From positions 1,310,627 to 1,374,626 of the forward strand of contig CAJINV010000007.1 in assembly GCA_905178155.1 (NCBI GenBank): a DNA stretch of 64,000 bases, in the 5' to 3' direction. The notes below the pieces were generated by a model, which worked only from the letters and a program-made list of their open reading frames with translations, ran no database searches and had not been told where the DNA came from. Source of the stretch: Amoebophrya sp. A120. Taxonomy: Eukaryota; Protista; Dinoflagellata. Shown here piece by piece: positions 121 to 61,328 of this stretch (positions are counted from its first letter, which is position 1; each line of letters opens with the position of its first letter). Made by a program: the position numbers and the translations under genes.

Positions 121-3047
121 ATGGGACGTGATGAAAGTAGTAGCAAACGACCGGGTCGCTCCGTGATGTCCGGTCGCGGAGATGAAATTCATCAGCAGGA
201 AGAAGACCTCGCTGCCCCTTCTAGTAGCGCTACTTCCAGCACGAACCGGGGTGGCCAGGGGGAAGCACCAGCATGCAGCTGCACAGGAAGTAGCACGAGT
301 GCGACTAGTAATGCTCTTGGCGAAACAAGAACTCGTGGCATGGGCATCAACAAGCAGACGGAAGCGGTAGATGGTACTACCGAAAACAACCCCCTGGAGG
401 ACGAGATGATCCTGAACAATCATGAGAACAACATCAATAAAAGCCCGTCGACGACCAGCAGCCTCGCGACAACCGAGCACAGCAGCGCCCGGAACTTCGG
501 CAGTAGCAGTCAAAGCAACCTGATGCCAGGAGCCGGGTACAGCAACCGCTCGTCTCCAACCGGCTCCACCGCGCACGACTGCGTGAGCACGGCAGCACTG
601 CACCTCAGCAGCGGCTTGGAATCGTCGCCAACAGAATTGCTGATGTCTACTTCGACGCCTAGTTCATCTAGAGGAGGTACAGGGATCAACATTATGGGGG
701 CGTCGACCACAAGCAATGAGAATGAAGAGGAAAATGAAATAAAAACGGCGCTAGGAGAAACAAGAAATACCCGTCCTGATCCTGAAGATCATGCTTCTTG
801 TAATCAAGAAGAACAGCAACAGCAACAGAAGCAGAATCATCTTGTTCGCAACGGAACGAGTTCTCGTGGTAGTTTTCGTACAACAGAAGAAAAAGTCCTC
901 GAGCTGCCATCCAATGCAACATCACCACACGACGATGTCGACTCCCTGGTGGATCACGAGACCCGGCCGCTAAGCGGCGCACCTAGACGACGAGGAGGAC
1001 AAGCACAGCCGGAAACTGCCGCAGTTGATGCGGCATCTTCGGCCCCCGGGTCATCTTCGCACGACTTTTCGTCCGGGATGAAGCTGCGCGAGAAGGGAAC
1101 AGATGATGTTACGTCTGGAGCACTAGTACACGGCAAGGAGCTACTCGACCGTTACGACTCGGCTTTTGCCGGAGCTCCTGCGTCGACGTCCAGTTCCTCT
1201 TCCTCATCTGCTGTTCGCGACGAGGAGCAGCTTCATCCTGATTTGCCTTCTTCTAGCAGGACGAGCTCCTGTCTTCGAGAAGTAGAAGGTGAACCGTGTG
1301 GCTCAACATCCACTAGCGATATCAAGACACACTACACCGAGAAACTGCAGCTTCCGATAGGAAAAAACGCAACTACTACTTCCCGGCGAGGCAAAAGGGG
1401 TAGTGGTTCCCGCAAAATAATGGATCTGTCGCCCTCAACATGTCGTGGCTCTCTGCATCTTCAAGCACTGGCTGAAGCGGGTCAGAATCACCTCTCTCGA
1501 CGTCAAGGGTCCGTGCACCACGACGCTGTTGAGCACCAGGAACTGCAGGTTGCGCAGCGAATCAATATTGACCCTGCAGCTTCCCCCAGTCGTCCCCTCC
1601 TCGGCGGCGACGGCACCGGGCGGAGTAGCACAGGGTCTACCTGCGGAAACAGCTACTGCAACTCCTCCAACGGTTATCAAACAAAAAAAAGTTCGTCACG
1701 ATCACACATGTTCATTTTTGCATTTTTTTACAAAACTGCGTGTGAGCATCAACTACATGCGTAAAAGTTAAAGTAGTTAATGACAGTCAACCTTCATACA
1801 GGATCATTCCCCTCATGCAATTCTCTACTAAGATGCCGATGCCCGAAAAGTTCTTCATGCATCAAAACCTTGTGGAAAAGGAAAATCAAAATAGCGACTG
1901 GGACTGCAACGAACTTTTTTCTTTCCATCACGGCAGTTCTGGTGGCCAGAGAACCTCGAACCCGAATAATTCTGTGAAGGCCCTTCGGAAGAGGGAGCAA
2001 CTGCACAACGCGAAAAAGATGCGCAAGAAGGTGAAGATTCCGGTTGTTCCGGGCCTACTGTCGTCCTATGGTAGTGGTCACCATTCCTCCGGAACAACAA
2101 GAACCCATGTGGGAAATAGTAAAAACGGTGGAGGAGCTGGAGCTGGAGCTGTCCCTGTCCCGCATCATGCGTATTCCACTTTTCCGGGCAGGTCGTCTTC
2201 GTCTTCTTTCCAGAATAGCAGGAGGGCCGCTCCTGCAGTAGAGCTGCAAAATTCATCTTCCACGACACTGGCTCCTGTAGCTCCTTCTTGCAGCTTCTGG
2301 ACGACCTTGCTAACAATGTCCACATATCCTGTGTAAAAACGTCCCCACACCAGAGTCAACATGGGAAATCTGCTAAACAAATCCCACAGCTTTGGTTGTT
2401 TGGCATGACAAATTTGGACGCGTAGTGTAGTGCTGTTTGAGCTCGTTCAGCAGCATTACAGATCTAGTAGCTCATGCTGATTGGAGCATGACAAATTTCA
2501 AAGCTGCATCTGAAAATGCTTCTCATGGGGCTCCGCATGAGAAACATTTTAAGCATGCAGAGTTGCGTGACAACTATGGTGTGGGGACGTTTTTAAACAG
2601 GATACTACAAGAGCTGCTGCAGCACAAGCAGGGAACAAAGCACCCGGCGGAGGTGCGCCGAGTTGTGCTAGCGACGCTGGCGTTGCTTTGCCATCTGGTC
2701 ATGCGGATGCTGAGAGGCACACGAGCAGCAATACTACAAGAACCCTGTCGGTCAACAAAGAAGTGCCCGGGATGAAGATGAACAAGCATATCGTCATGTC
2801 TGCGAACAGTCTTCAACATGTTACTGATCATTATGACAATGTGAACAGCACCAGCGCTGCAGGTGGAGAGCAGGGGCAACCTCGACATGACTTTCCAAGC
2901 GCCCAGGACCGCAGCTGCTTTGGGACCGATTCTGGCTTCCAAAACTGTTTTTGGTCGCAGGACATGTCCTCCTGGGAGTGCTTGCTAAAGTCCGTCGTGC
3001 CTGCGACCGCAGGAGGTGGCAGCCAGCCGCGGGGAAATCGAAAATAG
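121..3047 (+). CDS. Hypothetical low-complexity (S/T/G/Q-rich) protein, multi-exon
   Basis: ORFs 121-1764, 1815-2336 and the frame ending at 3047. Removing 2325-2609 joins the last two in frame (MST|RAAAAQ). The junction near 1675-1803 is unresolved. Confidence 0.5.
2325..2604. mobile_element. Introner, family A
   Basis: TIR TATCCTGTGTAAAAACGTCCCCACACC...GGTGTGGGGACGTTTTTAAACAGGATA; TSD ccaca/ctaca. Confidence 0.9.
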
Positions 3048-5143: not shown

Positions 5144-6207
5144 ATGGGGCTGCTAAACATCCTCAAGAAGCTGAAGAAAAACCAGAAGGAGGCGAGAATA
5201 CTGGTGCTGGGCCTGGATAATGCGTATGGAACTGGGCATGAAAAGTATCGCGTAGAAAGGCTGGCATTTTATTGCGTGGCTTGCCCAAAGTCTGTATTAA
5301 GAAAACACATTTTGCAGATGCAGGTGGACATACTTTTCTCTTTTGCATTCGATTTCCTCTGCCATGCGTTTTTGCCCAAGTCGCTACGCGATGCTTTTAC
5401 CAACCATAACCCAGGGAAGACAACAATTTTGAAAAAGCTCTCAGAAGAGGACATCTCTCACATCATGCCAACACAAGGTACAGAAAGATGTTTGAATCTT
5501 CGTGCAGTCGTTCTGCATAAAAAGCTTGACTAAGTAGTTACTGTTGATGTGGCAACAACAACTTTTTTGTGGCGTTTCATCTACTTGCTTTAAAGCATTC
5601 TGGTTAGAAAAATTGTGAATCACGCATATCCTTCACTTCCGCACAGGTTTCAATATCAAGTCCTTGGTGCACGATGGGTTTAAACTGAATGTGTGGGATA
5701 TCGGCGGGCAAAAGACCATCAGGCCATACTGGAGCAACTACTTCGAGTCATCCGACTGCTTGGTATCATGATAGGGCGTGAATTATTTAAGAATGTAGCT
5801 GCTGTCATCTTCTGCAAGTGAATAAACTACCGAGCGGCGTTATTGTCCTTTTGCATGCGGAGAAGGCATCATTTTTGTCTATGCAAAAACTACAACGCAA
5901 GAACGCCATTACAAATTTTTAGGTCTACGTTATTGACTCCTCGGATCGGCGAAGGCTCGAGGAGTCCGGGTCGGAGCTAAACGAGCTGCTCCAAGAGGAC
6001 AAGCTCTCGAACGTGCCGCTCCTGATTTTCGCCAACAAACAGGACCTGCTGCAGGCCCTGCCCGCAAACGAGATCGCCGAGGAGCTCTCGCTACACAACA
6101 TCCGCGACAGAACGTGGACGATTCAGGCGTGCTCCGCGAAGGCGGGGGAGGGGTTGCAGGAGGGCATGGAGTGGCTCGTCGGGCACATGAATTTGCAGAA
6201 CAATTAA
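5144..6207 (+). CDS. ARL3: ADP-ribosylation factor-like protein 3 (small GTPase), 4 exons, 181 aa
   Basis: Exons 5144-5224, 5414-5477, 5647-5762, 5923-6207 give [11 protein letters not shown]...GLDNAGKTT...PTQGFNIKS...WDIGGQ...FANKQD...QACSA. Confidence 0.95.
5225..5408. mobile_element. Aged introner forming ARL3 intron 1
   Basis: Ends TATGG...CCATA; removing the element plus 5 nt restores the P-loop GLDNAGKTT; no GT-AG solution keeps the Ala. Confidence 0.7.
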
Positions 6208-10900: not shown

Positions 10901-13900
10901 GAGCGAAATGAATGCGGGAAGTTTTGGGGGAGTCGGAGCAGCCATCGACGTCGCCTGCACCGGCGATAATCCCTTTTTGCGACCACCGACCAAAAACTCT
11001 GCGACAACGATTTCGTCGAGTGCGAAAGTGGGGATCAAAGTTGTCCCCGCAGTCGTGGTTCAAGAACCGGTTCTTGCGGTTCGTGCTCCGGAAGCGCTGC
11101 CAGGTCGTGTAGAGCCTGTATCCACGGAAGATAGTGCACCATCTTCAAAGTCGGTGGACCAGGAAACGAAGGCTGTAGCTGGAGGAGCGGAGGAGGACAA
11201 AAACAAAAACCTCCAAGGCGGAGGACTTCTTCTACGCGAGGAAGCACAGGGCGGTAGAGACGAGCAAGAGCAGAGCGTTCTTCATCTTCCGGAAGACAAA
11301 CCTACGGACGAAATAAATGTTGCTTTCCCAGAGCAGCTGCAGCAGCAACAGCAAGATCCTTGTGGTGTTGTTGGTATGGAAATTGTGGAAGAAACGATTA
11401 TTGAAGAAGAAATTTCGCCATCGGCGTCGTCGGGTGGAGCAGTTGCTAGTGCTGTGGCAGGAGAGGAACGACAGGATATTAGTTGTTCAGGATCTGCTTT
11501 GATGTTCCCAGCGGAGGAGCAGGTACCAGCATCTGTTGAGGTCCGGGGTGGACAAGCTGACACCGAGGACCCTGCTGCGCTTATTGAGGAAAACATCGTG
11601 GAGGAGGAGGTTCTTTCTCCGGTGGAAGCTGCCGCTCCTTTTGCCGCTCCTGTCTCGGTTTCCCCGGTCGTCGTGGAAGCTGCCGCTCCTGATTCCGCTC
11701 CTGTTCTCTCGGTTTTGGCGACTGTAGCGGAAAATGATGTCGAAAACAATACGTCAGCCGCGGTTCCCGCTGCAGCTTTCGTTCGCGTTGAGGCAGAAGA
11801 GGAAGTAGTAGGAGCGCAGTCCAATAATTCCAGTCCCTCAGCTTGTTCCAACGCCGGTGCGGTCGAGGAGATCAAGGGTGTCATCAAAGTCGGCGCTGCT
11901 ACGAACTTGAAGGCGAAGAACGTCACGGACGAACGCAATGAACTTGTTGTCGGCGGCACGGAAAGTAGTAGAACAAGTGGTCCATCTCCCATAGTACCAG
12001 AAGATCACCCGGAACAACGGGAAGCTTCTGCAGTAGACAAAGGAGAAGTTTTGGAACAAAACACAACTCGTCCCAGTATTTTCAATAACCCAGGGACTAC
12101 GACGGACGACAAAACAGCAACTACAAGCGAAATAAAAAATAGCGGCAAGTTCAAAATACCATCGGTTTGGCGTTTCCAGCCAGTGGTCAGCAGCACCGAG
12201 GATTCGTCCGATGCAGAGGAGAAGAAGAATAAATCCGACATAAAGCTGTTGCAGGACGAGGAAAAAAGCCATGCAGTCTCTCACGATCTTCCTCCAACAG
12301 AACAAGAAGAAGTACACGAAACAGTTGATATGGCTCTTCACGCCACGACCAGTGAAGATCCAATCCCTGAAATACAACACAGCCACGAGGACATAATTCC
12401 ACCCCCGAGAGAATCCGCGGCTCTGGCAGCCTGTTCTAGTACAAGTACTTGGTGTTATTTTGAAGAGGAGCAAGAAGAGGAACCAACGGCAACCATCCCC
12501 GAGCCCCGGGCATCGGCCGCTCTTGCAGAGGATCCCACGGCTGCACTCTTCGCTGCGATGGACTTCGCGGAAGACCGGGATGCGCGGAAAATGAGCGGGT
12601 TTGACTATTCGGAGGGGGTGCACGAAATGATGAACGGCGGCAGTTTGGGGGGCGGCGGACATGGAAATGGAAGTGGAACCACCAGCAGCCTGAATATCAT
12701 GAATCTGCTGGGCAGCTTGGGCACAACAACAGGAACGAACTCTATGACAACTTCAGGCGGCAATAACAGCTTTCAATCCAACTACAATTCCTCCACCTAC
12801 GGAGGCAAAAATCACCATTCTACTGCTGGTGCAACCGTCGCTGGAAAAAGCAACGCCGGGCCCTACGGAAAAGGCAACAAGAGCTGCAACAGCAGCTACA
12901 ATTCGTGGCAAAATCATGGCGGAGGTGGCGGTGGTAAAAATTCCGGGACATCTTCTACTTCGTGGTGGTGGAACAATCCTGACAACTCGACGTCAGAGCA
13001 ATATAATGCCGAAGGCTCTGTTGAAAACTATCCCCAGCCAGGAGGTAAGGGCGGGTACAACTACAACAAGGGGAACAAGAACGCTTATTCGCACATAAAC
13101 AACTTCGGCAAGAACTACGGGGAGAACAAAGGGAGTCAGAATTCTTACAGTGCATCCTGGCAGCACAGCAACGATAGCTACAAGGGTGGAAATGATTTCA
13201 ACAACAGTAAAATGTTCAATAACACCTCCAAGGGGGCGTCGATGTCGTCGACCAAGGGAAGCTATAATTTCCAGCAGAACAACAACAACTACAATTACAA
13301 AGGCGGCAGTTCTTTTTCCTCCGCCTTCGACAAAAACACTGCGCAGCAGGGAAAGAGCAATAATAAGTCCGGTAGTTTTATCAATGGCACCATGGGAAAG
13401 AACGCCAACAACTATCATTACGGGTTCTATCCCGGCGGCGGGGCAAAAGGTTCGGGGAAGCCAGCGGGCCAAATCGTCCGTGGAAAGTTCTACTGCCGGT
13501 ACTGCGACTACGACTGCGGGGACAATGAGTTCAAGTGGAAGCATATCCTGAGTAAAAACGTACCCACACCAGAGTCAGGATGGGGATTTTGCAACACAAA
13601 CCTAGGAGTTTTGTGAGTCACGCATGACAATTTGCGCTCTGCAGTGTAGTGCAGGTTAGCAAGTGCAGCCGCGTCACAGATTCATCTGCTCATCCTGTTC
13701 ACAGCATCATAAATTCCAAAACACGATCGGAAATGGCTCTCATGGGGATGCGCATTATAAGTCTTCCTGTCTTTGCAAATCTGCATTACAACTCTGGTGT
13801 GGGTACGTTTTTGCTCAGGATAAAGCAGCACTGCAAGGAGCGGCACATCCAGTGCATCGAGTGCGGGGAATCGCTGCCGGAGTTATCAAATGCAAAAATG

Positions 13901-43800: not shown

Positions 43801-45496
43801 CGCGTTGACGGGCACGACCAGGGTGGAGAGGTGGAGCATCAGCAACCCGTTTTTTCAGCAAAAGGAACAACATTTAGGAGAAGAAGGTACAACTTCTAAT
43901 CCCGCTGGCGCAAACGGGACGAACAATAATGGTGCAACTACGACGACGTCTGCGTCCTCGAGTGGGGCGAACAATAAGAACGGTTCTATCGAGAGAGAAA
44001 ACAGTTCAACATCAGGGATGAACAAAAGCAAAAAGGAATCCAAGAAGGACAAGAAGAACAGAAAAGGATCAGGAACAATAAACACCGGTAGCGACGAAGA
44101 GATTCAGCCCGGCCCGCAGCTTCCGGTTCCGAAAAAGTCGCACTTTTTCTCGCTGGAAAACAACAGCGACCAGCTGGACTACAGCAAGATTTTCGGCGAG
44201 CTCGCCGTGCCCTGCTTTGAAGGCAACCGGCAGGTGTACGCGAAGACGGGTCGGAAGGAGGGGATGGAAGACCTGTGGACCTATTTGGTGGATTGCGACC
44301 GGAAAAACTACATTTTGACGGGGGGGATTTCCCCGCACCGACGGGCGCCGAGCGAAACGTGCGGGCTACTCCCCGGGCAGACGTACACGATTTTGAAGCT
44401 CTTCACCCTAGAGGTGTCCTCCAGCAGACCAACGTCCGCGCAGCAGGCGAAGGAGATCCAGACCAACAGTAGTCCTGCTGGTGGTTGTTCTACTTCTAAC
44501 GGCGCGCAGAACATCAACCAAAAGCAGACCGTCCGGCTGGTGCAGCTGCGAAACCGCTTCCTGGAGTTCGCCTGGCGCGGCCGGTGGCACCCGGCCTGCC
44601 CGCTGTGGTGCAACCTTCCCATGGAAACCAGGCAGCAGCTGGAGCCGTGGACCTTCAATTTCAACGCGGGAAACGACAACAACCGCCCGTCGTCCAGCAA
44701 CGGCGCTTTCTACGTGCAATGGGAGGACTTCGTGTATGGGGCTCTCAAACGTTACATTCTCAGCTGTTACATGAATTTGTCATGCAAAAGCACCATTATC
44801 ATTCTCACGATCAAGCTGCTCCGCATGACAAATTTGCGGAGGGCTAAATAGCACTATACTCCGTCCCAAATCTGTAATGCAAAAGGCGCAATCTTCCTCC
44901 TTTCACTTTTGCCCTTCTTGCATTGCAAATTCATGTAACAGTTGAGAATGTAACGTTTGAGAACGCCATATCGTGTGCGTGTTCCAGTCCGTTGGGGTGT
45001 GCAAGAAGCGGGACCTCGGGCCGAAGCGCGGGGCGGCGATTGAGCACTACCGAAACACGGTGACCTATCCTGAGTAAAAACGTACCCACCCCAGAGTTGT
45101 CATGCAGATTTGCCATGACAGGAACATTTGTGATGCGCAACCCCATGACAGGCATTTTCAATTGTGTTTGGGAACTTGTAATGCTGTAAACAGGATCAGA
45201 AGGTCGATTTGTGATGCGGCTTTCCTTGCTAACTTGCACTACCTTACGGACTGAAACTTGTCATGCGTGACTCACAAAGCTCCTAGGTTTGTGTTGCAAA
45301 ATCCCCATCCTGACTCTGGTGTGGGTACGTTTTTACTCAGGATATGACCGGGTCGAAATTCAAGAGAGCGACGACGGGGGATTTGAGCGCGTCCACAAGC
45401 ATCTCCGCTGGGCCGTCGGGCGCAAGCATCATCTCGCCGGGGCAGCTGTCGCAGAGCCAGGAGGGAAGTCAAGACAACGGGGTGGACACGGTGTGA
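40838..45496 (+). CDS. Calpain-like (peptidase C2 domain) protein, probably inactive, N-acylated, ~1037 aa
   Basis: Exons 40838-41445, 41612-41698, 41983-42045, 42368-42575, 42824-44734, 44976-45065, 45350-45496. Motifs YVDLTFPP, WVTVTVDDHLP, EKAFAKLYGSYSAL, LRN, WRGRW, FYVQWEDF. N-terminus MGGCVAK. Confidence 0.88.
41446..41606. mobile_element. Introner, family F
   Basis: TIR TATCACACAGAAAAAARCTGGCAGG; TSD tccaa. Confidence 0.93.
41699..41977. mobile_element. Introner, family A, inverted
   Basis: Near-identical reverse complement of 13544-13822; TSD ccgga/ccggg. Confidence 0.95.
42046..42362. mobile_element. Introner, family G
   Basis: ~55-bp TIR TATGGA..GTCAGG.TTGAAATCG.CAAAGTTGAAATGATTTGCCATGCATAAAAT; TSD tcgga. 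Confidence 0.93.
44735..44970. mobile_element. Introner, family H
   Basis: TIR TATGG..TCTCAAACGTTACATTCTCA.CTGTTACATGAATTTG; TSD tcgtg; join WEDFV|CVFQSVGVC. Confidence 0.93.
45066..45344. mobile_element. Introner, family A, inverted
   Basis: Family A TIR; TSD tgacc. Confidence 0.95.
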
Positions 45497-50000: not shown

Positions 50001-53000
50001 CAAACGCTTTCCGATGTCCGCATGGCCAATGCGAAACTGGATGTATCAAATGTAAAAATGTCTGGGTCTGGAAGATTCCGAGATTTGTGATGCAGTTTAT
50101 CGAAGCTCCACCAAGTCTGCAACGCAGGGTCTAACATCACAGGATCTGCAGGCCCTTGGTGATGCCTGTTCTGCATCACAAATGCCTTCTCAGCATGGCC
50201 AGAAATGGGCACCTTTTGCAAGTCACGCAATACAGATTTTTGTACGATTCGCAACATGCATCACAAGTTCGAATCCTTCCAGACCCAGACATTTTTGCAT
50301 TTGATAGGATGCCCAGGGTGACCATATCGCGAAGTTGGAGGAGCAGCTGGAAACGACACTGGAAAGAAGAGAGAGGGAATACAAGGTGCGAACAAAGATA
50401 ATATGATCAAGGAGCTTCTACTTCTTGTTTTTACTCTCACATTCTTGTCTGAAAATGACACTGACGCAAGAAATAATAAACATATAAGGCGCAGCACTAT
50501 CGACCTTCATTTTTCATCTGTATGTTGCGAGACGCAAATTTTATGTCTCGCAAATGAACTACAGGAGAACCTCGCCCGTTCCGAGCAGCTGCAACTTGAG
50601 TTGATGGAACAAAGCGAACTTGTGAAGAAACAGTCTATCGAACTGGACTCCGCAAATCGCTATTTGGAGCAGCTGAAAAAAGAAGAAGAAAAGCACTACA
50701 AACAGGTGAAGGACTTGGACCAGAAACTAAGACAAACGAAGAAGGACCGGGACGAGAATTTTGGGCAATTGGAAGACTACGAAGTAGAACTTAGGCGGTT
50801 AGTCCGGGAGGTCGATTCGCTGCGAGAGCAAAACTCGCAACTGAGGAGTAGTACAACACCAGTAGCAGCATTATCAACAAGCGCTGCTAGTAGTAGAGAG
50901 CAAGTGCAAGGGCAAGTAGAAGCCTTGGTAGCTGCACGGCAGCCGGCACATCAAAGTAGCACAACTCCAAAGCGGTCGCCCTCCGTGCAGAAGTCGTCTC
51001 CTTCGCAGCCTTCGCCCGCGGAGCAACCGCTGGCACTAGATCAGGTCAAGATGAGGGCAACCAGCAGCCCACGATCGAGTATTAGAATACAAATTTTTGA
51101 TTTGTGTTGCTGTGCTGCGTGTTGCAATTTTTTCGAAGACCACTTTGTCCTCTGTCAACTACGTGCTGGTCAGAAATACGGTCGAGTGCAGTCCTGATGG
51201 AAGATCGATCAATCACATGATGAGAGGAAAAAATCATAACAGCTCTCCCCGTGGAATCTCGTGCGCCCTCGCGCCCGCGCGGGGTCAGCAGCGTAACTTC
51301 CTCTGCGTCAAAGCGATCGCCCGCTGGTGTTAGGATGAGCTCACCACTGTACCCTGCCGGTGGTACCACAAAGCTGAAGACGCCGCAGGAGACGCCGAAC
51401 CGGGAGAAGTCGGTACCTTTTGCTTGTTGCGTTGATCAACATTGTCGTGCATGGTGAACATAGATTTTGTTCCCTGGAGGTATGCAAGGAAAAGTGAGCA
51501 GATCTAGCATGCGGCCACTGGCAAAAAATATACGTCACAGGCCCACCCCCTCTCCGCTTCTGGCTCAAGAGGCGGACATCTTCAAGGGGGTTTATCGTGA
51601 GAAAAACGTGTTACAGTTACAAACCCGGGTGCAAAAATACAAGCAAGAGGACAGAAATCCTCTGTCATGCAGGAAATGCTCCTTCGTGCCAGCCTCATTC
51701 CATGCGTGTTTTCATCCCTTACAGTCAGCTCTTTGCAAGTTTTTTTTTGCCCTGCAGAGTGAGCAAGTTTGTGCTGCTGAAATTCCAAGAAATGTTGAAC
51801 TGTAGCACTTTTTTTCTTGGATATGGTTCTTCCTCTTCTTCTTCCTCCTCATCGAAGCGGTCTGCTTCCCAGTATCAAATGCAAATATGACTGGGTCTGG
51901 GAGATTGCGAGATTTGTCATGCTAGTCCGGCACGGCTCTGAACTCTGTATTGCGTGGCCGCGAACAGCTCCTCTTGTCTGTCATGCAAAAACGCAATTTC
52001 TCATGCGGAGTACGCAACTCAGAACAACGGAAAAACTTGTCATGCTGGGCAGCGCATAAATACAGTGCGCTCACTATTCCCTTTCTTGCATTACAAGTTT
52101 ATTCCAGACGCAGACATACACATATGTGCAATGGATATCCAGCCCGCCACAACCAATTACCGAATTGTACCCGTTTACGGGCAAACCTTCTACCAGCCAG
52201 CGAAGGGCGATGCCGTCGACGAGCAGCTGGGCAATTTCTTGAACACCCGGGAGCACAGCAAAATCCTGTTTTCTCGCGTTTCGAAGGGGAGGTATCTGTA
52301 CGGGAGGCTGGAGGTGGAGCTCTCCGTCGCTCGCAAATCTTCTGCTTCGGAGCTGGTGAAGCGTGGCGAGAGCAGTAGTGGTACCAACTACACAAAGTTG
52401 CTGAAAGTCAACGTCCTCGTGATGCCCGACGAGTTGAAGCAGGAAGTTGGTGGAGAGGAAGTAGCGAAGGAGATCATGGAAAAACCGTTCACCATAAACG
52501 AGTTCGTGCATTTCTTCGAAGATCTAGAGTTCGACGCGTGTGAGCGGCAGCAGGGTGGAGTTCTTGTTGCACAGGACGAGCTGCCCGAAGAGGATGGTGC
52601 AGCTGGTGGAGGCGCAGCTGCACGAGAAGCCGCCCATGCGGGTGGTGAACTACAGAAAGCTAGAAGAACCCGTGCCGAAAGGGTTGGGACGAGAAGAGGA
52701 GACCACGCTGGTTCAGGGCCAGCTGGAACGGGTACAAGCATTGCAGTAGGGCATCAGTCGGGGGCCAATCATCTCGCAAGTATACCGCATCACCAGGGGC
52801 TGGAACCTCAGCAAAGACTACCTCCCGGCCCGGCGAAGGTTTTCTCTTTCTCGTCGAAGGACGGACTGCATGGTGCGCCGGGTCGTGGACCACCTGCAAA
52901 TTTCCTCCGGAACAATCCCTTTCCCCCACCAGCTTCTTCTTTTTCTGCAACTACAGGGGAAAGCAATAGGAATATTAGCAGCTTGAGAGGTACGACAACT

Positions 53001-54468
53001 ATGGTCCCCTCGTCCGGGCCGCCACCGGCCCAGGCTGGAAATGTTCTCCGCGCTGGCTCCGTTCCGCCCCTCGTAGCTGCTACGGCGGGTCCAACAACAT
53101 CACAGCGCCACTTCGACCAGCAAAAAATGCCGCTCTGCTCCCAGCAATTATCTACCTCCCAGTCCCAGTCGAGGAGATTACCACGGAATCATTTGCTCTA
53201 CAGCCTGCAGACACCCTCGCCGAGTGTGGAGGTGGGAGCTGCACAGGAACCTCCTCAAAATGGAGTGTTGAATGTGGCAAGAATAAACTCACACAATTAT
53301 TCTTCATCATCCGTGTCCGTCGGCGCCCCGCCACCGCGGTTACCCACTAGAATGTCAAGCGCCGGGAGTACATTCAACAATAAGAATTCATCTGCGTCGA
53401 TCCCCATCCCGCCGTTCACGACCCACGTAAACACGGATGGGTCGAAACTCACCACGAACAGCAATCGGACCAATATCAAAACGAAAAATCCCCCCTCCCC
53501 ATATCGAAAACGATGAAATTTGTGATGCTGTATTTGAGTACACAAATCGACTTGTAATGCTAGAAGGCCAAGAGACGCAGCTGTGGCCTCGTTTGCAGGC
53601 AATTTGTCATGCTGTCTCCCACTTCCAGCTGCCCCCTGTCATGCTGAAGATGCAAGGCTCTTCCACGCCAACCAGCATTACAGTCCGCATCTTTTCCCTT
53701 CTAGCATGACAAAGCTGATTTGTGACCACAAATCTGCATCGCAAATTTCTAGTTTGAGTATGGGGTGGGGGGATTTTCCATTTTGATAACCAATTCCAGG
53801 GAAAGATCGCACACTTTCGGGACTGTCGCTGGGGAACATGAGCCGCCTGTGAACTTGAGCAGAGGTTATGCATTGCTGTTTTGGAAGTATCGATCTCGGT
53901 CTGGAAAAGCAGTGCCAGGTTTGTCATGCTCGGCTAGGCGCGTGACTGGCAAGACTGTCATGCATGGCGCCCAAAAGTTAAAGTGCCACTTTTCTGTGAT
54001 TCATGCAAAGACGCGGTCGTCTATAATGCAGAAAACACAAGAACATCAATCTACACGTTGTACTTCCAGCATGATCCCCAAACCTTGTCATGCTTCGCCG
54101 TCAGAAATTCAGGCTCTCTCGTGATTGTCCAACCCGCATCTTGTTTCCAGACCCAGACGAAAGTGTTTGCATTCGATAATAGAGCAGGTGGCAGTGGGGC
54201 TACATCAAGCGGAAACAACAGTGGCAAACTGCTTGCCGCCTCGCTCAGTACCAGGCAACTGCAGCGGCCAAGTTCTGCGGGGGGGAACGTACAACCACAA
54301 GGCGCCTCTGTGGGTGCAGCCAATTCCCCCTTTGGCCCCATCCCCACGACCGGTGTGATACCCGCAGCGCATTTGCGACCCCCGCCGGCGCTGAACGTTG
54401 CGGCCGCCTTTGCGAACAAAATGGCTGGATCCTACTCCGTGCCGCAAAGTGTGCGGTTTGCGCAATGA
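47003..54468 (+). CDS. Long coiled-coil protein with GAS2/GAR-like domain (cytoskeletal), ~16 exons
   Basis: E/Q/K/L heptad-rich exons joined in frame. FYQPAKGDAVDEQLGNFLN...ILFSRVSKGRYLYG...TINEFV resembles the protist GAS2-type domain. Confidence 0.7.
47374..47648. mobile_element. Aged introner, family B, now bounded by GT-AG
   Basis: TATGCATTG..TGCCTGGAG...CTCCAGGCCCAGACATATTTGCAATGCACA; TSD lost. Confidence 0.8.
47769..47945. mobile_element. Introner, family F
   Basis: Family F TIR; TSD agaaa. Confidence 0.93.
47958..48225. mobile_element. Introner, D-like
   Basis: TATCCGAAGGAAAAAA...TTTTTTCTTCGTATA; TSD aaagg. Confidence 0.88.
48471..48791. mobile_element. Introner, family G
   Basis: Family G TIR; TSD ggcga. 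Confidence 0.92.
48892..49173. mobile_element. Introner, family B
   Basis: Family B TIR; TSD tcgaa/tcgga. Confidence 0.9.
49229..49528. mobile_element. Introner, family C
   Basis: Close relative of 32780-33101; TSD ttttc. Confidence 0.93.
50044..50306. mobile_element. Introner, family B
   Basis: Family B TIR; TSD ggatg. Confidence 0.93.
51593..51823. mobile_element. Introner, family D
   Basis: TATCGTGAGAAAAACGTG...CACTTTTTTTCTTGGATA; TSD gggtt/tggtt. Confidence 0.85.
51873..52137. mobile_element. Introner, family B
   Basis: Family B TIR; TSD cccag/tccag. Confidence 0.88.
53474..53788. mobile_element. Introner, family C
   Basis: Family C TIR; TSD accaa. Confidence 0.92.
53867..54178. mobile_element. 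Aged introner, family B
   Basis: Degenerate family B TIR; removing element plus 5 nt is in frame (RG|AGGSG). Confidence 0.8.
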
Positions 54469-55609: not shown

Positions 55610-58600
55610 ATGGACGCATCGGCACCCGAAACGCCGAAGACGCGGCCTGATGAGATGACGGCCGCTCCGGTCGTGGCTACCGGGTCTCCGATCGACGCGA
55701 AGAGGATGCAAGAGGGAGCGAAAGTCGACCACATGGAGCTTGCTTTCCCCGAGACTGGAGCAGCGAGCACCGTGATCACAACCCACTTCAACGCACGCAG
55801 TCTCTTTTTGGGCTCCTTTTTCTTCTGGTTATTCGTTTCCGCTGGGCGGTTCATTCTGTTTCCGTTCTTCGGCATCATATCCCGAGAAAAATAAACGGTC
55901 TCAGTCTCAAACTCTACTTTGCAGTAGACTTTGCATAATAGGTTCGCGAAGTAGGATAAACAAAACCGGCAATCATGCGTCAAAAATAAAGTAAAACCCA
56001 AGAGATGAAAACACGCATATTTTTAAAGGACCTCGTAGTTCCACCTGCTCTTGCATGTCGAGCATGTTGACCAAAAACAGTCTGAACGAAGTTCCGCAAC
56101 ACAAGATGAGACTGAGACAGCTTTTTCTTGCCTATACACCACCCCGCTGATGTACTTCTCCATTGTCGACACGGCGATTGTGACCCTGCACGTTTTGGTG
56201 CTGTTCTACATGAACGAGCGGTACCACTTTCGCCCCCACTATCTGTACGCGCACCAGAAAGCCGTGGCACAGAACAAGTTTCTGCCTTACGAGCGCCCGG
56301 CCGCTCCTGCTTTGACGCCTTCTGCCCCCACTCCGCGGTTAACGGTGCGCGCCACGGAACTCGTCGTGGACGAACACGCACTTGCGGTGATTTCGGACCA
56401 AAAGCACCTATCCAACTGCACAAGAACTCTCCCTCCTCCCCATTTGTATGATCTTCGATGTTCATCATCTTGAAGAACAGCAACAGAAACAACAGCAGAG
56501 ATGTTGTAGCTTCTGCATGTGAAGACAAGTCCACAGGACACGAAAAATAAATAGAAGGACTATAAGGGAAAAAATCACCGCAACCTTCAGAAGAAAATTC
56601 TTCAGAAGAACCTTCAGAAGAAAACAAAAATCTTCTGAAGGTTCAAAAATGGCTGTTTTGAAAAAGACACAAAATCGGAACGGATTCAGGTCCTGTTTCA
56701 AGAAAAACAATTTTTTTTTTCAGACCTTCAGAAGCTTTTGTCGAGTTTTGACCTTCAGGAAGGTTTTTGAAACCTTCAGAAGAATTTTGATGCACAAAAG
56801 CTTCTGAAGGTTTGTCAGCTGTTCACTTTTGACCTTCCTGAAGGTTTTTAACCTTCTGAAGGTGCAATTTTTGCAACCTTCTGAAGGCCGAATGAAAAAA
56901 GTGGCGTCTTTTACAAAAAAAATTGCAAAAAGTCGCGAGTTTTTTTTTGACCTTCAGAAGGTCAAAAAACCTTCCTGAAGGCCTTCAGAAGGTTGCAGTT
57001 CTTCTGAAGGTCCAAAAATCTTCTGAAGGTTTTCTGCAGCTTTCCGCAAGCTTGCGAACCCAAAAAATGTTTTCTTCGACTAACGCGCCGCGTGGAAAGA
57101 GCGCGACTTGGCCTCGTTCGCGTTTAGATGCTTCGCGCACTGCTGTCGCGATTCCCGTCGCTCAAGAAGCGCCTGGCACTTTGACAAGAAACCAAAGCTG
57201 CCCGCTTTTGTAAAAACAAAAGGCGAGACCTGGCTAGGTAGCGGACAACAGGCGAGTTCTTTCCTGGTTTCTTCCTGATCTGGCCGGGCCTCCGAAATAA
57301 AAGCCGCCAAAGCTGGCCACTATTGTAAAGCGAGAAGCGACCTCGTTGCTTGTTTGTTAGTCTGGGCCTCAGAGACGAAGCCAAAAGCTGACCGTCTTTG
57401 TTTTCTCCCGAATTTGGCCACTTCGAGAGAAGCCAAACGCGGCCACTTTATTAGAGCCGACAAAGTCGAGCGCGAAAATTTTTCAGGGCAGACTGGCATG
57501 AAAATGGGGCCTACGCTGAAGAGTTGCTTTATTTTTTCCCACGCGGCGCACGCCGCGTGGATTGGTTCTTACTTACTATGTAGTTTTATCGTGTCTTCGG
57601 AGTACTGATGTACAACTGCTTCGTATAAGTAACTGCAAGAGTTGATGATGTCCATCCTCGGACCCCCTACAACGTCCCATGGCTGGGATCTTCATTGCAA
57701 TTATTCGCATGACAAGTAATAGGTGGGGGTTGACGAGTTGTGCACATGGATAGCAGCACCCGCAGGTGCACAAGCAGGTGAAGAACTACATGCGGGCGTC
57801 CATGCGGCGGGACAGCACCCGGAGCCTCCTCGGAGGGCCTAGTCCGCACGGCTCACCGAGGTCCGACGTCGGGGCCAACAAGGCGGAAGACGCTGCAAGA
57901 AATGCATCCCCGCGATCCGACGTGGTTGCAGCTGCAGCCCAGCAACAAGCTGGTGAACAAGCTGGAGCAGCCCCCCTTGCAAATGTTGATGTTGAGCGCC
58001 CGGCCCCCGCGCAGGGGCAGCAGCTGTTGGCGCCGGTGTCCCCAGAACACGTGGATTTCGCGGATGCGACCAGCAACGTTGGCGCAGATCAGCAGGGCGT
58101 GGTTCCGTACGTGCCGGCGGCCTGGGGTTCCACGGGCGACAACGAAATCATCCACTGCTTTGCCGTGTTGCACTACAAGGAGCCGGAGGAACAGCTGTAC
58201 ACGTTGTGCGAGAACCTGGCGGACCAGAAGGCCCGGGGCCGCAAGGTGCTCCTGATCGGCATGGAGAAGGGCACGCCGGACAAGGAAAAGAAGATGGAGA
58301 AGATTGCCGAGATTGCCAACACCCACCCGATCCGGGGGGGGCCGGGGGAACAGGACCGACCGGCGTTCGAGGCCGTGCTGTACACGGTGCACACCCTCCG
58401 GCCGGGCGAAATCCCCGGCACCGGCAGCAACCACTTCCAGTGCCAAGTGGTGGCCGAGCTGTTCTTCGGGCAAGCGGGCGAGCACATGCTCGACAAAGTC
58501 ATCTTCTTATCACAGGAAAAAAGTTAATGTTAACGGAATTTCAATTTCAATTTGTGATGCAATGACGCATCACAAAACGCGCCCGAATTTGTCATCCATA

Positions 58601-61328
58601 GCATTCATATTTTTTTATATAAGTAGGCAAAAGTTGTAGTCACGCGTCCGACTGCACTCTGTGAAAACCGTTAACGTTATACTCTTTTTTGTTTGATACT
58701 TCTCCAAGTTCGACTGCAACATGAGGCTGTCCGGGCCGCTGGTGGAGGAGATGGAGGCCGCGTGGGAACTCACGCACGAGGACGAGCGGGTGGGGCTTTC
58801 CTTCATGCCCAATGTGTGCTGGGCCGCGGACGTGCACGACGAGAAGCGGTCGGCGTGCGAGATCGCGGCGAGCTGCGCCATGTGCTGCGGCATGAACATC
58901 GCGCCGTTCTCGATCGCCTTCGTGTCCGGGTCCCTGGCCAGTGCCATCAAGGCGGGCTACACCAGCCCCACGCTGCTCCCCGAGGACGAGATGCTGTTCA
59001 CGAAGCGGGCCGTGATGGTGCCGCACTCGCGCACGGTCCGCCTGTACTCCCGCGTGATGAAGACGTTCTACCCGGCCGAGTGCAGCTCCTACACCTTCGT
59101 GTTCGGCGTGTTCTGGCCCAAGTACAAGCGGTGGTTCGCCGGGTGGCTCGAGCTCCACGCGTACATGTTTTGCTGGCTGGTGCTCGGCCCCCGCTTGGCC
59201 TCCATGCACGACGAACACCCGCGCCGCCGCAGCGTGTACTGGCCGCGCGCCTGGTTCATCTTCTTGATGAGTGTCCTCCGGAAGTACATGTGCATGGTCG
59301 CCGCCGTGGGCGCCATCCCGATGACCTTCGTCCACATAAGCGCGTGGAACGATTCCGATCACTACCTGGACTACGGGCGCGGGAACTATCACATGGAGGT
59401 CGAGGACTGGCTCTACGAAATCTTTGCCACGAACCCGTCGTTATCAACTGCAAATATCGATATTCGCGCTGGATGTCTGGAACATTTTTTGCCGAGTTTG
59501 TCATCGACAAATTGTACATGACGCGCTCCCGCAATTTTCATGTTGCCTGCGATGCATGCTCTAGCATCAACAACATAGCTTTTATTGCGAAGCAGGTTTG
59601 CAGCCCATGCCTGTCCTGCAGGAGAAATAGTTCTTCTTGGCTACTTTCTAAGTGCCTTTTGCTGCTCATGCAGTACGTCGTGTTTTTGTATGATAGAAGC
59701 GCCATGATCGCAAGGGGGCGCCGCCATTCTTTCCAGATCGGAGGACATAGTATTTTTGCAATGCATAGTCGCACGCGTACATGACGGAGGCGTACGGATA
59801 TCCCCTGTCGGACGAGTACATGCGGTCCCTTATCCTGCGGAAAAACGCCCCCACCCCATAGTTGTCATGCAAATCTGCATGCTCAAAGTGTTTGTCATGC
59901 CGAGCCCCATGAGAAGCGATTTCTAGTTGTGTTTTGGAATTTGTTATGCTCCAATCAGCATAATAGGCTAGATCTGTGATGCTGCTGAACTAGCTAAACA
60001 GGACTACACTACGAAGCCAACTTTGTCATGCGCAACGGCCAAAGCTTCTGCATTTGTCTAGCAGATTTCCCATTTTGCCTATGGGGTGGGGACGCTTTTA
60101 CCCAGGATAGCCCTCCAGAACTACCGCCGGGCCCAGTTTCAAACGATGCTGGTAGCGGTCGGGACTTTTTTCGCCGTGATCACCGCCTTCCGCTCGCTGC
60201 GGAAATTCTACCTGGCTTTCCCAGGGGTCATGAAGTTCAACGCCTGGGCTTTCTTCAAGGGCTTTCTCGTGACGGGGCCCATGAGCTTATTGATGACGTT
60301 CGCTCTGCTGTACACCTACCTGAAACACGGGCTTTTGAACGAGCCGATGTTGCATTCCGCGCAGGGAGATACGGTGGCGGCCATGCAGAAGGGCGGCGCA
60401 CCATCTTCCGCGTCGCCGTCGGGCGACAAGCCCTCGCAAGAAGGAACAAGAACTTCTGCGCAAAACGTCGCACAACCGGCGCAAGAACTGCAAAGCGAAC
60501 AAGTGCAGCCAGAACAAACGACGCCTATCCCGTGGAAAAACGCCCCCATCCCCATACCTGTCATGTAAATCTGCAAGCCTGAGAGAGCTGCTTCTCTTTC
60601 TCATGCGCAGCCCCATGAGGAGCAGGAGGGAGAGGAGGAGCATTTATTTCCATTGCTATCCTCTGGAAGTTTCAAGTTTGTCATGCTCGAATCAGCATAC
60701 GCAACCTGCGTGAGGATTTGTGGTGCCGCTTAGGTTTATTCGCTAGCTAAACAGGATTAATGCACGACTGCGAGCTCAGGTGACCATTTGTCTTGCGCAA
60801 CAGCCAAAGCAAACCTCGGTTGTTGATTTGTGTAGCAGAATTCCTAGCTTCGTGGCCCTGGAGTGGGGACGTTTTTGCTCCGGATAGCTTCACCTGCTGA
60901 CGTCCTTCCCAGGGAGTCCCAGCAGTCTCAACAGTCGTCCAAACCAGCAGAGCCACAACATCTGGCGGTCCCCATGCCCCAGGTGCAGGTGGACGCAGAG
61001 AAATTGGATGCAGAAATACGTTATGCATTGCAAATATGTCTGGGTCTCCTGGATCTGGAAAGATTGGAACTCGTCATGCAAAGTCTCGATCTTTGCAAAA
61101 AAGTCTGTGTAGTTGCATCATGAACTGCACCAAAAGTTGGCCTTTTCTTGCTAGGCAAAAGGCGGACTTCTCATTCGCGGTCGGCGTCAGGAGGGTCTCG
61201 CAAAATCTGTGATGCTTCTGTGCGCATTCCAGAGCGTACTCGTGGTCCGCGAGATGCATGACAAATAATCTTGCTTTCTTCCAGACCCAGACATGTTTGC
61301 AGTGCATATACTTACCTCGTATATGTAA
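55610..61328 (+). CDS. Membrane glycosyltransferase, GT2-like
   Basis: Motifs HYKEP, LIGMEKG, HTLRPGEIPGTGSN, FSKFDCN (DxD position), PEDEMLF, KYKRWFAG (QxxRW-like) plus transmembrane helices. Seven introners removed in frame. The 3' end is uncertain. Confidence 0.7.
55878..56136. mobile_element. Introner, D-like
   Basis: TATCCCGAGAAAAA..GTCTCAGTCTCA...TGAGACTGAGAC..TTTTTCTTGCCTATA; TSD catca/cacca. Confidence 0.87.
56409..57752. mobile_element. Long introner, E-like (1.34 kb) with a probable nested element
   Basis: TATCCAACTGCACAA...TTGTGCACATGGATA; TSD gcacc/gcagc; in-frame join. Confidence 0.85.
56580..57030. repeat. Cluster of ACCTTCAGAAG / CTTCTGAAGGT motifs in both orientations
   Basis: More than 15 copies or variants seen directly. 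Confidence 0.9.
58508..58698. mobile_element. Introner, D/F-like
   Basis: TATCACAGGAAAAAAG..GTTAACGG...CCGTTAAC..CTTTTTTGTTTGATA; TSD cttct. Confidence 0.9.
59442..59767. mobile_element. Introner, family B (diverged)
   Basis: TATCAACTGCAAATAT...TTTTTGCAATGCATA; TSD gtcgt/gtcgc. Confidence 0.85.
59831..60109. mobile_element. Introner, family A, inverted
   Basis: Reverse-complement relative of the 2325 and 17875 copies; TSD tccct/gccct. Confidence 0.9.
60526..60886. mobile_element. Aged introner, family A
   Basis: TATCCCGTGGAAAAACGCCCCCA...TGGGGACGTTTTTGCTCCGGATA; TSD decayed; removing element plus 5 nt is in frame. Confidence 0.82.
61022..61308. mobile_element. Introner, family B
   Basis: TATGCATTGCAAATATGTCTGGGTC...GACCCAGACATGTTTGCAGTGCATA; TSD tacgt/tactt. 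Confidence 0.9.

Follow-up and report, generated by a model that had tools for sequence, protein, structure and literature searches.

How do genes stay readable when their coding sequences are interrupted by transposon-like elements that lack the usual splice signals? The window, a 64,000-nucleotide stretch of Amoebophrya sp. A120 DNA (contig CAJINV010000007.1), raises this question, and an earlier note made from the sequence alone proposed that about 40 terminal-inverted-repeat (TIR) transposons of about eight families act there as non-GT-AG introns under one rule. We propose, with a probability of about 0.78, that these elements are non-autonomous, MITE-like TIR DNA transposons, the "introner elements" of Amoebophrya sp. 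A120, and that each is removed together with five further nucleotides at positions set by its stem.

TIR elements and their target-site duplications

We scanned the window for TAT...ATA pairs with target-site duplications (TSDs), followed by relaxed scans and manual checks, and counted 34 TIR elements (Table 1). The elements of the earlier note were thus real, but fewer than it had estimated and of more families, at least 10, with the pattern TATC-N6-AAAAA in most. Thirty-three elements measured 161-361 bp and one 1090 bp (149-361 bp in the comparison with MITEs). A TAT start and an ATA end were present in 32 of the 34, the exceptions being the elements at 32780 (TAC start) and 47374 (ACA end). 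The TSD was exact (5/5) in 23 elements, matched at 4/5 in seven and was decayed in four, which bore out the claim that nearly all run from TAT to ATA between 5-bp direct repeats. Both orientations were found for families.

By TIR alignment score, the TAT...ATA pairs with an exact 5-bp TSD formed two clear groups (22 with a score of at least 13, nine with a score of 6 or less), and a control with flanks shifted by 3 nt gave 16 pairs with a top score of 5. In 122 kb of other contigs, 31 TAT...ATA TIR pairs were detected, with a TSD of 5/5 in 16 and 4/5 in eight; the shifted control on the same contigs gave no 5/5 TSD. The family A TIR had 3110 forward and 3094 reverse matches in the 115.5-Mb genome (control pattern: 0). 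No target-site consensus was found in 53 TSDs. When 31 elements were folded as RNA, all 31 formed a terminal stem, with a mean z-score of -7.5, a rough value from only eight mononucleotide shuffles per element. The stem mismatches comprised 54 G-U and 50 A-C pairs, with no G-U wobble bias on the transcribed strand, so this comparison gave no sign that RNA pairing is under selection.

The elements showed the traits of MITEs: TIRs at the ends, TSDs that do not vary in length, dispersal in many copies and a lack of coding capacity. Integrase-like TIR elements have been reported for A120 (PMC12130899). The search for an autonomous transposase partner through rve-integrase loci, covering 12 loci and four LTR-retrotransposon matches among the 30 matches in the genome, found none; the 12 loci lacked these TIRs within 1.5 kb. 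The four other matches, which scored identically, were rejected as candidates, being a 7-kb LTR retrotransposon with 368-bp direct LTRs.

Table 1. Coordinates of the TIR elements, and of two canonical introns, in the window
Feature	Coordinates	Strand	Remarks
TIR element, family A (TATCCTG.GTAAAAACGT)	2325..2604		280 bp; TSD ccaca/ctaca (4/5); 338-codon ORF over junction after excision
TIR element, short 'TATG..AAAAGTATCG' family	5225..5408		184 bp; flanks atgcg/accca 2/5 (TSD decayed); splits P-loop GLDNA/GKTT of Arl2-like GTPase
Canonical GT..AG intron, Arl2-like gene	5478..5646	+	169 nt; no TIR; Arf HMM 46/47/48 continuous over intron
Canonical GT..AG intron, Arl2-like gene	5763..5922	+	160 nt; starts GTATCATG; Arf HMM 85/86 continuous over intron
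TIR element, family A	13544..13822		279 bp; TSD aagca; inside 1971-codon ORF
TIR element, family B (TATCAAATGCAAAAATGTCTGGGTCTGG)	13884..14144		261 bp; TSD ggagt
TIR element, family A	17875..18154		280 bp; TSD ggaga
TIR element, family B	18217..18478		262 bp; TSD cgatg
TIR element, family C (TATCAAAATGAAAAATCCCCCC)	22030..22350		321 bp; TSD gatgg; inside 342-codon ORF
TIR element, family A	25032..25298		267 bp; TSD tacgg
TIR element, family B	25375..25636		262 bp; TSD agcag
TIR element, family A	29669..29888		220 bp; TSD caaga; one of five junctions within 770-codon ORF
TIR element, family D (TATCCAAGAAAAAAACTGTG)	30226..30451		226 bp; TSD agcac
TIR element, family I (TATCGCGAGGAAAATTGCCCCC)	30668..30965		298 bp; TSD gaagt; 88%-identical copy in L015 with its own 5-bp TSD agtcg
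Long TIR element, family E (TATTACAGTGCACAACTCCCCC)	31184..32273		1090 bp; TSD caagc
TIR element, family C	32780..33101		322 bp; TAC start in place of TAT; TSD cggtt
TIR element, family F (TATCACACAGAAAAAAACTGGCAG)	41446..41606		161 bp; TSD tccaa
TIR element, family A	41699..41977		279 bp; TSD ccgga/ccggg (4/5)
TIR element, family G (TATGGATCTGTCAGGATTGAAA)	42046..42362		317 bp; TSD tcgga
TIR element, family H (TATGGGGCTCTCAAACGTTACA)	44735..44970		236 bp; TSD tcgtg; near calpain gene 3' end; inside 744-codon ORF
TIR element, family A	45066..45344		279 bp; TSD tgacc; RNA contig block starts exactly at 45345
TIR element, family B2	47374..47648		275 bp; ends ACA; flanks tttgg/gtcgc not repeats; RNA skip 275+5
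TIR element, family F	47769..47945		177 bp; TSD agaaa; skipped in RNA contig together with 47958 element
TIR element, family D2	47958..48225		268 bp; TSD aaagg; sole window element with GT-AG register
TIR element, family G	48471..48791		321 bp; TSD ggcga; RNA contig skip 326 = 321+5 nt
TIR element, family B2	48892..49173		282 bp; TSD tcgaa/tcgga (4/5); RNA contig block ends 48890
TIR element, family C	49229..49528		300 bp; TSD ttttc; skipped in RNA contig
TIR element, family B	50044..50306		263 bp; TSD ggatg; RNA contig block ends 50038, just ahead of TSD
TIR element, family K (TATCGTGAGAAAAACGTG)	51593..51823		231 bp; TSD gggtt/tggtt (4/5)
TIR element, family B2	51873..52137		265 bp; TSD cccag/tccag (4/5)
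TIR element, family C	53474..53788		315 bp; TSD accaa
Probable degenerate B-like element (weak call)	53888..54178		291 bp; TSD lost
TIR element, family J (TATCACAGGAAAAAAGTTAATG)	58508..58698		191 bp; TSD cttct
TIR element, family A	59831..60109		279 bp; TSD tccct/gccct (4/5)
TIR element, A-like	60526..60886		361 bp; flanks acgcc/gcttc (TSD decayed)
TIR element, family B2	61022..61308		287 bp; TSD tacgt/tactt (4/5)

Elements leave the RNA as element plus five nucleotides

The RNA evidence is one assembled contig (X6 record 11), which would hide minor isoforms and comes from a run labelled as RNA by guess; it joined positions 46955-47371, 47652-47768, 48225-48465, 48792-48890 and 49529-49682. 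Six elements were missing from it, with a loss of element plus 5 nt for each: the gap at 47372-47651 measured 280 nt (275+5; element 47374-47648), the net loss over the 47769 and 47958 elements was 455 nt (182+273), and that over the 48892 and 49229 elements was 592 nt (287+305). The X6 run had no depth over the intergenic positions 46540-46927 and is therefore RNA-like; element sequence was still present in it, at the low per-copy depth that unspliced precursors would give. The DNA contig X1 record 2 was unbroken over 45322-47797, with a depth of 42.5 compared to 41-46 in the flanks. Two raw RNA read sets labelled as the same species, X12 and X13, gave next to no reads on the window and are probably from another strain. 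These results demonstrated that the elements stay in the DNA, are transcribed within the gene and leave the RNA as exactly the element plus 5 nt, and that this removal from the pre-mRNA restores the pre-insertion mRNA.

Homology searches were run exon by exon, and joined sequence was used only for open-frame counts. At element 5225-5408, positions 2-25 of the Arf HMM lay in the exon ending at 5224 and positions 26-46 in the exon starting at 5414, so that exactly 189 nt (184+5) are removed. The RtcB gene of this genome has five exons, which aligned to human RTCB (7p3b_A) at 70-234, 235-287, 289-335, 337-412 and 414-507, with one split codon at each of three element junctions and no insertions or deletions. 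Sequence that intervenes in the gene DNA and is absent from the mRNA, as belongs to the introner kind, was thus found both between the X6 and X1 contigs and in the exon colinearity of RtcB and Arf. The chaperonin genes held 16 elements, two of them with mismatched TSDs; one change was synonymous and the other fell at a non-conserved residue, and the register is not readable there. Elsewhere, elements with mismatched TSDs lay in proteins without homologues, and a homologous-protein search with exon 40763-41443 gave no match.

After excision, open frames ran over several junctions (380 codons over six, 770 over five, 612 over four and 1971 over two), and element length plus 5 fell in all three residues modulo 3. 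The earlier note had held that the frame is restored at every site; we found this proven at seven elements, six by RNA and one by the Arf P-loop, and the whole-ORF length test alone favoured +5 at only 17 of the 34 elements, since two frames are open in several exons. A naive flank-frame test and a min(L,R) ORF test were underpowered, being disturbed by neighbouring elements and by such exons. As to the conserved motifs said to be rebuilt, the GTPase P-loop was recovered by the Arf HMM, and calpain was present but its match is split by no element; the UHM and GT2 motifs were not located, and a zinc finger matched only below the Pfam threshold.

Splice signals, cut register and published counterparts

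Among six possible registers, a canonical one was available in three of 32 elements (GT-AG, GC-AG and AT-AC, one each) and in none of the other 29, in line with the claim that most lack a usable GT-AG. An in-frame GT..AG within 12 nt of the element ends was absent in 18 of 32, and GT and AG supplied by the element plus its TSD, the canonical introner type, occurred only in the 47958 element (TSD aaagg; 1/32). At element 47374, an in-frame GT..AG at 47373-47649 was available and unused in the RNA contig, so the use of nearby GT-AG sites, which the earlier note had named as a possible refutation, did not appear there.

The additional 5 nt were removed despite a decayed TSD at 47374-47648 (by RNA) and 5225-5408 (by the P-loop), suggesting that the cut is set from the TIR hairpin and not by the repeat; this favours boundaries measured from the hairpin. 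We defined r as the count of TSD bases retained from the upstream copy. It was 3 or 4 for the 47374 element, at least 4 for the 48892 element, where the RNA block end at 48890 places the fourth TSD letter in the upstream copy, and at least 3 for the 5225 element. On these three junctions, a single register can tentatively be written, with the intron as 1 nt + element + 4 nt. We also observed that the N-TAT intron start given by this register resembles the GTAT start of canonical introns in this genome, a likeness that would fit a spliceosomal reading.

Introner elements of A25 and A120 were described by Farhat et al. 2021 (BMC Biol, PMC7789003) as repeated non-canonical introns with TIR hairpins. 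That study reported 29,850 repeated introns (17% of the genome), validated by RNA-seq, with U1 not detected; it gave the A120 inverted-repeat motif as TAT + 7 nt + AAA and the direct repeats as 3-5 nt at variable positions, and stated that the splice borders relative to the hairpin were unknown. The element system of the window is this published system, which shares its non-canonical introns, TIR hairpins, boundary direct repeats, TAT + 7 nt + A-run motif and 115.5-Mb genome. The kind is therefore already known, and the "one rule" was in large part in print. TAT followed by 7 variable nt and at least three A was found in families A, B, B2, C, D, F, I, J and K and in the short family; families E, G and H have TAT alone in common with the published motif. 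Unlike in the published account, the window has a single TSD length, 5 bp, and every removed unit is the element plus 5 nt, even without a repeat; and whereas PMC7789003 argued against mobilisation by a transposase, the constant TSD length here argues for it. Our additions are the constant TSD, the element-plus-5 unit where the repeat has decayed and, tentatively, the 1+4 register.

The canonical introners of Micromonas and Aureococcus, in the account of Huff et al. 2016 cited in PMC7789003, are TIR DNA transposons, non-autonomous and flanked by TSDs; each brings one splice site and borrows the second from its TSD, giving a GT-AG intron for the normal spliceosome. They likewise make introns at genomic scale from TIR and TSD elements, but only one of 32 window elements yields GT-AG.

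The idea of hairpin recognition now has precedents in SOS splicing and in Euglena. In SOS splicing (Zhao et al. 2025, Nature, PMC12779559), DNA transposons are cut from exons in RNA upon TIR pairing, independently of GU-AG and TIR sequence; RTCB ligates the fragments, and the elements stay in the DNA. The process is imprecise, with several sites used and indels left, and acts as a fail-safe on rare insertions (PMC12779559). A120 resembles it in the RNA-level removal of exon-borne DNA transposons and in possessing an RtcB gene. It differs in that excision is exact and constitutive and concerns tens of thousands of elements: all junctions examined were exact at element plus 5 nt, and imprecise multi-site excision was not seen. 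Furthermore, a six-frame Pfam search gave no match to the SOS factors CAAP1 (PF15335) and AKAP17A (RNA-binding domain, PF25015), a weak negative because these proteins evolve fast and the genes are split. Our literature search found no paper linking SOS splicing with Amoebophrya elements. Euglena has two intron classes (Nomura et al. 2025, PNAS, PMC12501133), of which the nonconventional one lacks GT-AG and has pairing ends, with a positional cut code read from the paired motif (N3 before CAG, N5-6 after CTG; 3' spacer 2-3 nt longer). Measurement of the cuts from paired ends would be common to both, with spacers of 1 and 4 nt in A120. The paired motifs differ, however (CAG/CTG with N3 and N5-6 spacers versus TAT/ATA with spacers that sum to 5), and the Euglena introns, which belong to an unrelated lineage, are not characterised as TIR transposons with TSDs and many copies.

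Candidate mechanisms and their implications

In the mechanism that we favour, transposition with a 5-bp staggered cut would have put the elements into coding sequence, leaving the 5-bp TSD. The two element ends would pair into a long stem, and the cut sites would be set by distance from the stem base, not by GT/AG or by identity of the flanking repeats. In the best-fitting register, the 5' cut would lie 1 nt upstream of TAT and the 3' cut 4 nt downstream of ATA, giving an intron of N5 + TAT...ATA + N1-N4. Only transposons whose TSD length equals the 1+4 offset could then invade exons harmlessly, and this match would account for the single end grammar common to many TIR families.

For the catalyst, a route that cuts and ligates outside the spliceosome, comparable to SOS splicing or to the Euglena system and plausibly with RtcB as its ligase, may well be responsible, at odds that we judge slightly short of even. 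The alternative of a divergent U2-type spliceosome, with U1 lost or unrecognisable and the TIR stem serving only to bring the exon ends together, is plausible at somewhat lower odds. Its weak signals would be TAT at intron +2 to +4 and the U-run of the 3' arm, with the first and last intron nucleotides free. The genome holds at least eight U6 snRNA copies and gave no match to U1 snRNA, ordinary GT-AG introns occur in the same genes as elements, and nearly all spliceosomal proteins were found by Farhat 2021 (PMC7789003). Canonical introns start with GTAT or GTAC, comparable to N-TAT under the 1+4 register; a T5 run lies in the 3' TIR arm, 11-16 nt from the element end; and the U2 spliceosome of Fritillaria, as cited in PMC7789003, can process massively non-canonical introns. 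Such a spliceosome would, however, have to tolerate any nucleotide at both cleavage sites. At element 47374, it would have bypassed an AG 3 nt upstream of the observed 3' site although the 5' site can be read as GT, and the removed length is still element plus 5 nt once the repeats decay. The earlier proposal of an excision route that reads the TIR hairpin or terminal geometry is therefore upheld in that removal is exact, independent of GT-AG, common to unrelated TIRs and both orientations, and maintained with decayed repeats; the route may or may not be non-spliceosomal, with U6 and the GT-AG introns of the same genes leaving room for a stem-guided spliceosome. It is rather doubtful that a second, constitutive, exact and geometry-only pathway exists. 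Such a pathway would dispense with the spliceosome: it would cut at any long terminal stem, 1 nt ahead of the base and 4 nt past it, and rejoin the ends, perhaps through RtcB. Any other catalyst appears improbable.

Excision at the DNA level by a transposase-derived nuclease, yielding an expressed genome copy as with the internal eliminated sequences of ciliates, is very unlikely. TA-bounded ciliate sequences of this type resemble TIR and TSD elements with conserved termini, and loss of exactly one element and one TSD is also the outcome of precise transposon excision and repair. Unlike those sequences, however, the window elements persist in DNA contigs at flank depth, as in X1 record 2, and the element-free contigs come from the run that lacks intergenic sequence yet keeps element sequence at the low per-copy depth that fits unspliced precursors.

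Hardly credible is template switching by reverse transcriptase over the hairpin between direct repeats, with the elements really kept in mRNA or in pseudogenes: all RNA evidence is cDNA-derived and direct repeats around a strong hairpin are the classic setting for such jumping, but the essential, conserved RtcB, Arl2-like GTPase and CCT subunit genes would be destroyed without removal in vivo, element length plus 5 covers all three residues modulo 3, and the 47374 and 5225 elements are removed without being flanked by repeats.

About two thirds of the introns in Amoebophrya A120 are removed without GT-AG, and how this happens has been a question since 2021. Stem-set removal of element plus five nucleotides, the reading that we prefer, offers a concrete and testable positional code, as the rule is constant and kept where repeats have decayed. 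It also links Amoebophrya introners, Euglena nonconventional introns and animal SOS splicing, which have so far been discussed apart. If the geometry-only pathway is real, it would be related to animal SOS splicing and to the Euglena nonconventional code, as a precise version at genome scale, and its 1+4 offset would have selected transposons with a 5-bp TSD, leading to the colonisation of about 30,000 exon sites. Should a single hairpin-measuring machinery serve all three systems, it would represent an ancient means by which eukaryotes coexist with DNA transposons, and also a route for transposons to become introns.

Introner elements in the window and across the genome

Inverted-repeat scans of the window revealed dozens of short elements with complementary ends. 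In a strict census, TAT...ATA pairs separated by 100-1500 nt and flanked by an exact 5-bp direct repeat (target-site duplication, TSD) fell into two groups by gapped terminal inverted repeat (TIR) score, with 22 pairs at 13-30 and 9 pairs at ≤6; a control with the flank comparison offset by 3 nt gave 16 pairs with a top score ≤5. The full list, built from this census plus relaxed termini and TSDs, cross-locus comparison, one conserved gene read by eye and a final permissive scan, comprised 34 elements. Both TAT and ATA were present in 32 of them (one starts with TAC, one ends with ACA), and the TSD was perfect over 5 bp in 23, matched at 4/5 in 7 and decayed in 4. Elements measured 161-361 bp, except one of 1090 bp, and formed at least 10 TIR families, the majority fitting the template TATC-N6-AAAAA; families E, G and H have TAT alone in common with the rest. 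These counts are close to the roughly 40 elements from about 8 families claimed in the earlier note, whose rule of TAT...ATA ends plus a 5-bp TSD was borne out. Integrase-type DDE enzymes produce 4-6-bp TSDs, which would suit this 5-bp duplication. TIR elements bearing integrase-like ORFs have been reported in A120 (Gozashti et al. 2025, PMC12130899), but no link between them and the 5-bp TSD was found.

The window lies on contig 7 of a 115.5-Mb assembly of 401 contigs, in which the family A TIR had 3110 forward and 3094 reverse matches (reversed-pattern control, 0). Other contigs (122 kb) yielded 31 TAT...ATA TIR pairs, with TSDs of 5/5 in 16 and 4/5 in 8 and no 5/5 in the shifted control, and the chaperonin gene loci held 16 further elements, 14 with perfect TSDs. 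No target-site consensus was found among 53 perfect TSDs. Families A, B, C, F and G occurred in both orientations within plus-strand genes.

The motif GTCATG/CATGAC (often TGTCATGC) is common to element interiors and was 13-fold enriched there (53 in 7.5 kb of interiors vs 28 in 54 kb outside). It occurred in either orientation, in 27/33 elements and 9 TIR families, and could act as a shared site for transposase binding or RNA-protein contact. Other repeats are listed in the table. The LTR retrotransposon has three near-identical copies on contigs C1, C2 and C18 (98.7-99.7% identical), which probably reflects recent activity.

Coordinates of the features discussed (window positions, or loci of genome G000)
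Feature	Coordinates	Strand	Description
Element 5225	5225-5408		Interrupts P-loop GLDNA/GKTT of Arl2-like GTPase; flanks atgcg/accca
Long inverted-end element	23024-24458		1435 bp; long near-perfect inverted ends (TATGGCCGTACTAACTACGG...GGCCACA); no 5-bp TSD; appears distinct in kind from introners
Element	45066-45344		Carries GTCATG/CATGAC
Element 47374	47374-47648		Carries GTCATG/CATGAC; flanks tttgg/gtcgc
Element	47769-47945		Adjacent to micro-exon
Micro-exon	47951-47957		7 nt
Element	47958-48225		Adjacent to micro-exon
Element	48471-48791		Carries GTCATG/CATGAC
Element 48892	48892-49173		Flanks tcgaa/tcgga
Short inverted-repeat tract	56580-57030		Dense CCTTCAGAAGG / TTTTGAC units; no relation to TAT...ATA elements
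RtcB (L021/L022)	G000:C5:6115035-6117073	minus	RNA ligase gene split by one GT-AG intron and three elements
LTR retrotransposon (L014+L018)	G000:C8:3694608-3701653		7 kb; 368-bp direct LTRs; 1986-aa open frame

Removal of the element plus 5 nt

Because two raw RNA read sets had no coverage of the locus, the read evidence is at contig level. A 1075-nt contig from X6, an RNA-like run whose RNA label is a guess, mapped to 46955-47371, 47652-47768, 48225-48465, 48792-48890, 46 unplaced letters and 49529-49682. Its lengths were consistent with loss of the element plus 5 nt at all six elements of that gene (280 = 275+5; 455 = 182+273; 326 = 321+5; 592 = 287+305), bearing out, at contig level, the exact loss expected in the earlier note. 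Depth in X6 was zero over intergenic 46540-46927, the longest contig was 15 kb, and two other contigs terminated precisely at element or TSD borders (45345 and 50038). The DNA run X1 gave one unbroken contig over 45322-47797 at a depth of 42.5, equal to that of neighbouring unique sequence, and the elements are therefore kept in DNA. The X6 lengths also fit retention of the micro-exon. In three estuary metatranscriptomes from 2025 (X9-X11), 6-9% of sampled words from window 44600-50400 were present, which may represent element sequence or a related environmental strain.

Conserved proteins were searched one exon at a time. RtcB has an ordinary intron of 109 nt and elements of 290 nt (TSD caaca), 154 nt (cgcga) and 157 nt (ctacg). 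The five exons matched human RTCB (7p3b_A) at 70-234, 235-287, 289-335, 337-412 and 414-507, and the protein was colinear with no indel, given one split codon per element junction. In the Arl2-like gene, the exon that ends at 5224 matched positions 2-25 of the Arf HMM and the next one, from 5414, positions 26-46; the HMM ran unbroken over the other two introns, which are plain GT..AG. In-silico excision gave plus-strand ORFs spanning two junctions (1971 and 744 codons), three (365), four (612), five (770) or six (380). The claim that deleting the element and one repeat restores the frame was supported by the X6 contig, RtcB and the Arf P-loop, but removal of the element plus 5 nt gave the longest ORF at only 17/34 elements; with several exons open in two frames, ORF length is a weak single-element test. 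As element length plus 5 falls in every class modulo 3, inexact removal would destroy the reading frame.

The TSD renders six registers equivalent, and all six were scored for canonical ends. A canonical-type pair was possible in 3/32 elements (one GT-AG, one GC-AG, one AT-AC), and in 18/32 no GT..AG in frame lay 12 nt or less from the element ends, in line with the earlier claim that most lack a usable GT-AG. At element 47374 an in-frame GT..AG at 47373-47649 was available, yet 280 nt were removed in the X6 contig. The flanks of 47374 and 5225 are not repeats, and the element plus 5 nt was still lost at both (RNA and P-loop spacing, respectively), which argues for boundaries measured from the element ends and against reverse-transcriptase jumping between repeats, an artefact also excluded because essential genes require removal in vivo. 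The direct repeat would be a mere scar of insertion, unneeded for excision.

The register r, the number of TSD bases retained from the upstream copy, was 3 or 4 at 47374, at least 4 at 48892 (RNA block mismatch-free through 48890) and at least 3 at 5225, where a lower r would replace a conserved Ala with Pro. A value of r = 4 fits all three junctions, giving an intron of N5 + TAT...ATA + N1-N4, and we tentatively propose a single register in which 1 nt, the element and 4 nt are removed. Two more elements with mismatched TSDs, in a chaperonin gene, added no case, as one difference is synonymous and the other affects a non-conserved residue; mismatched TSDs at other loci fall in proteins that lack homologues. 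In both decayed-TSD elements, G directly precedes TAT (5224 and 47373), so that under this register these introns start GTATG. The canonical introns seen start GTAT or GTAC (RtcB intron 1, Arl2 introns 2 and 3).

Published systems and the excision route

The introner system was described in strains A25 and A120 by Farhat et al. 2021 (PMC7789003), who reported that non-canonical introns exceed 60% of the total, that A120 has 29,850 repeated introns (17% of the genome), and that hairpins arise from inverted repeats of 8-20 nt, which in A120 begin with TAT followed by seven variable nt and an A run; U1 was not found. The observation of elements in the earlier note is confirmed, and is therefore a rediscovery of a kind already known. 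The present refinements are a uniform 5-bp TSD, compared with direct repeats of 3-5 nt in that study, removal of a fixed 5 additional nt even where no repeat is left, and the register proposed above. In animals, mRNA is freed of DNA transposons upon TIR pairing by SOS splicing, which is spliceosome-independent, uses RTCB and is imprecise (Zhao et al. 2025, PMC12779559); none of the papers in the library searched links it to Amoebophrya or introners. Nonconventional introns of Euglena follow a positional code whose distances are counted from a paired motif (Nomura et al. 2025, PMC12501133).

A terminal stem formed in all 31 elements folded as RNA (mean z-score -7.5, rough control of eight shuffles). 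Stem mismatches on the transcribed strand comprised 50 A-C vs 54 G-U, and this near equality gives no signature of RNA-specific selection; in long stems, single mismatches may be of little consequence. The genome contains at least 8 U6 snRNA copies, and U1 snRNA had no match in it, in agreement with Farhat et al. An RtcB gene is present, and searches of the genome for CAAP1 and AKAP17A domains gave no match, a weak negative given fast evolution and intron-split genes. The RtcB gene, whose product is a candidate for the ligation step of hairpin-guided excision, itself carries three such elements.

The proposal that excision reads hairpin and terminal geometry instead of splice dinucleotides is partly supported: removal is exact, at the RNA level and anchored to element ends, but a spliceosome guided by the stem remains a rival, since the N-TAT intron start resembles the GTAT start of the genome's canonical introns. 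Both cleavage sites, however, tolerate any nucleotide and nearby AG is ignored, and a cut-and-ligate route is therefore slightly favoured. We conclude that excision of these elements is RNA-level, hairpin-anchored and positional.
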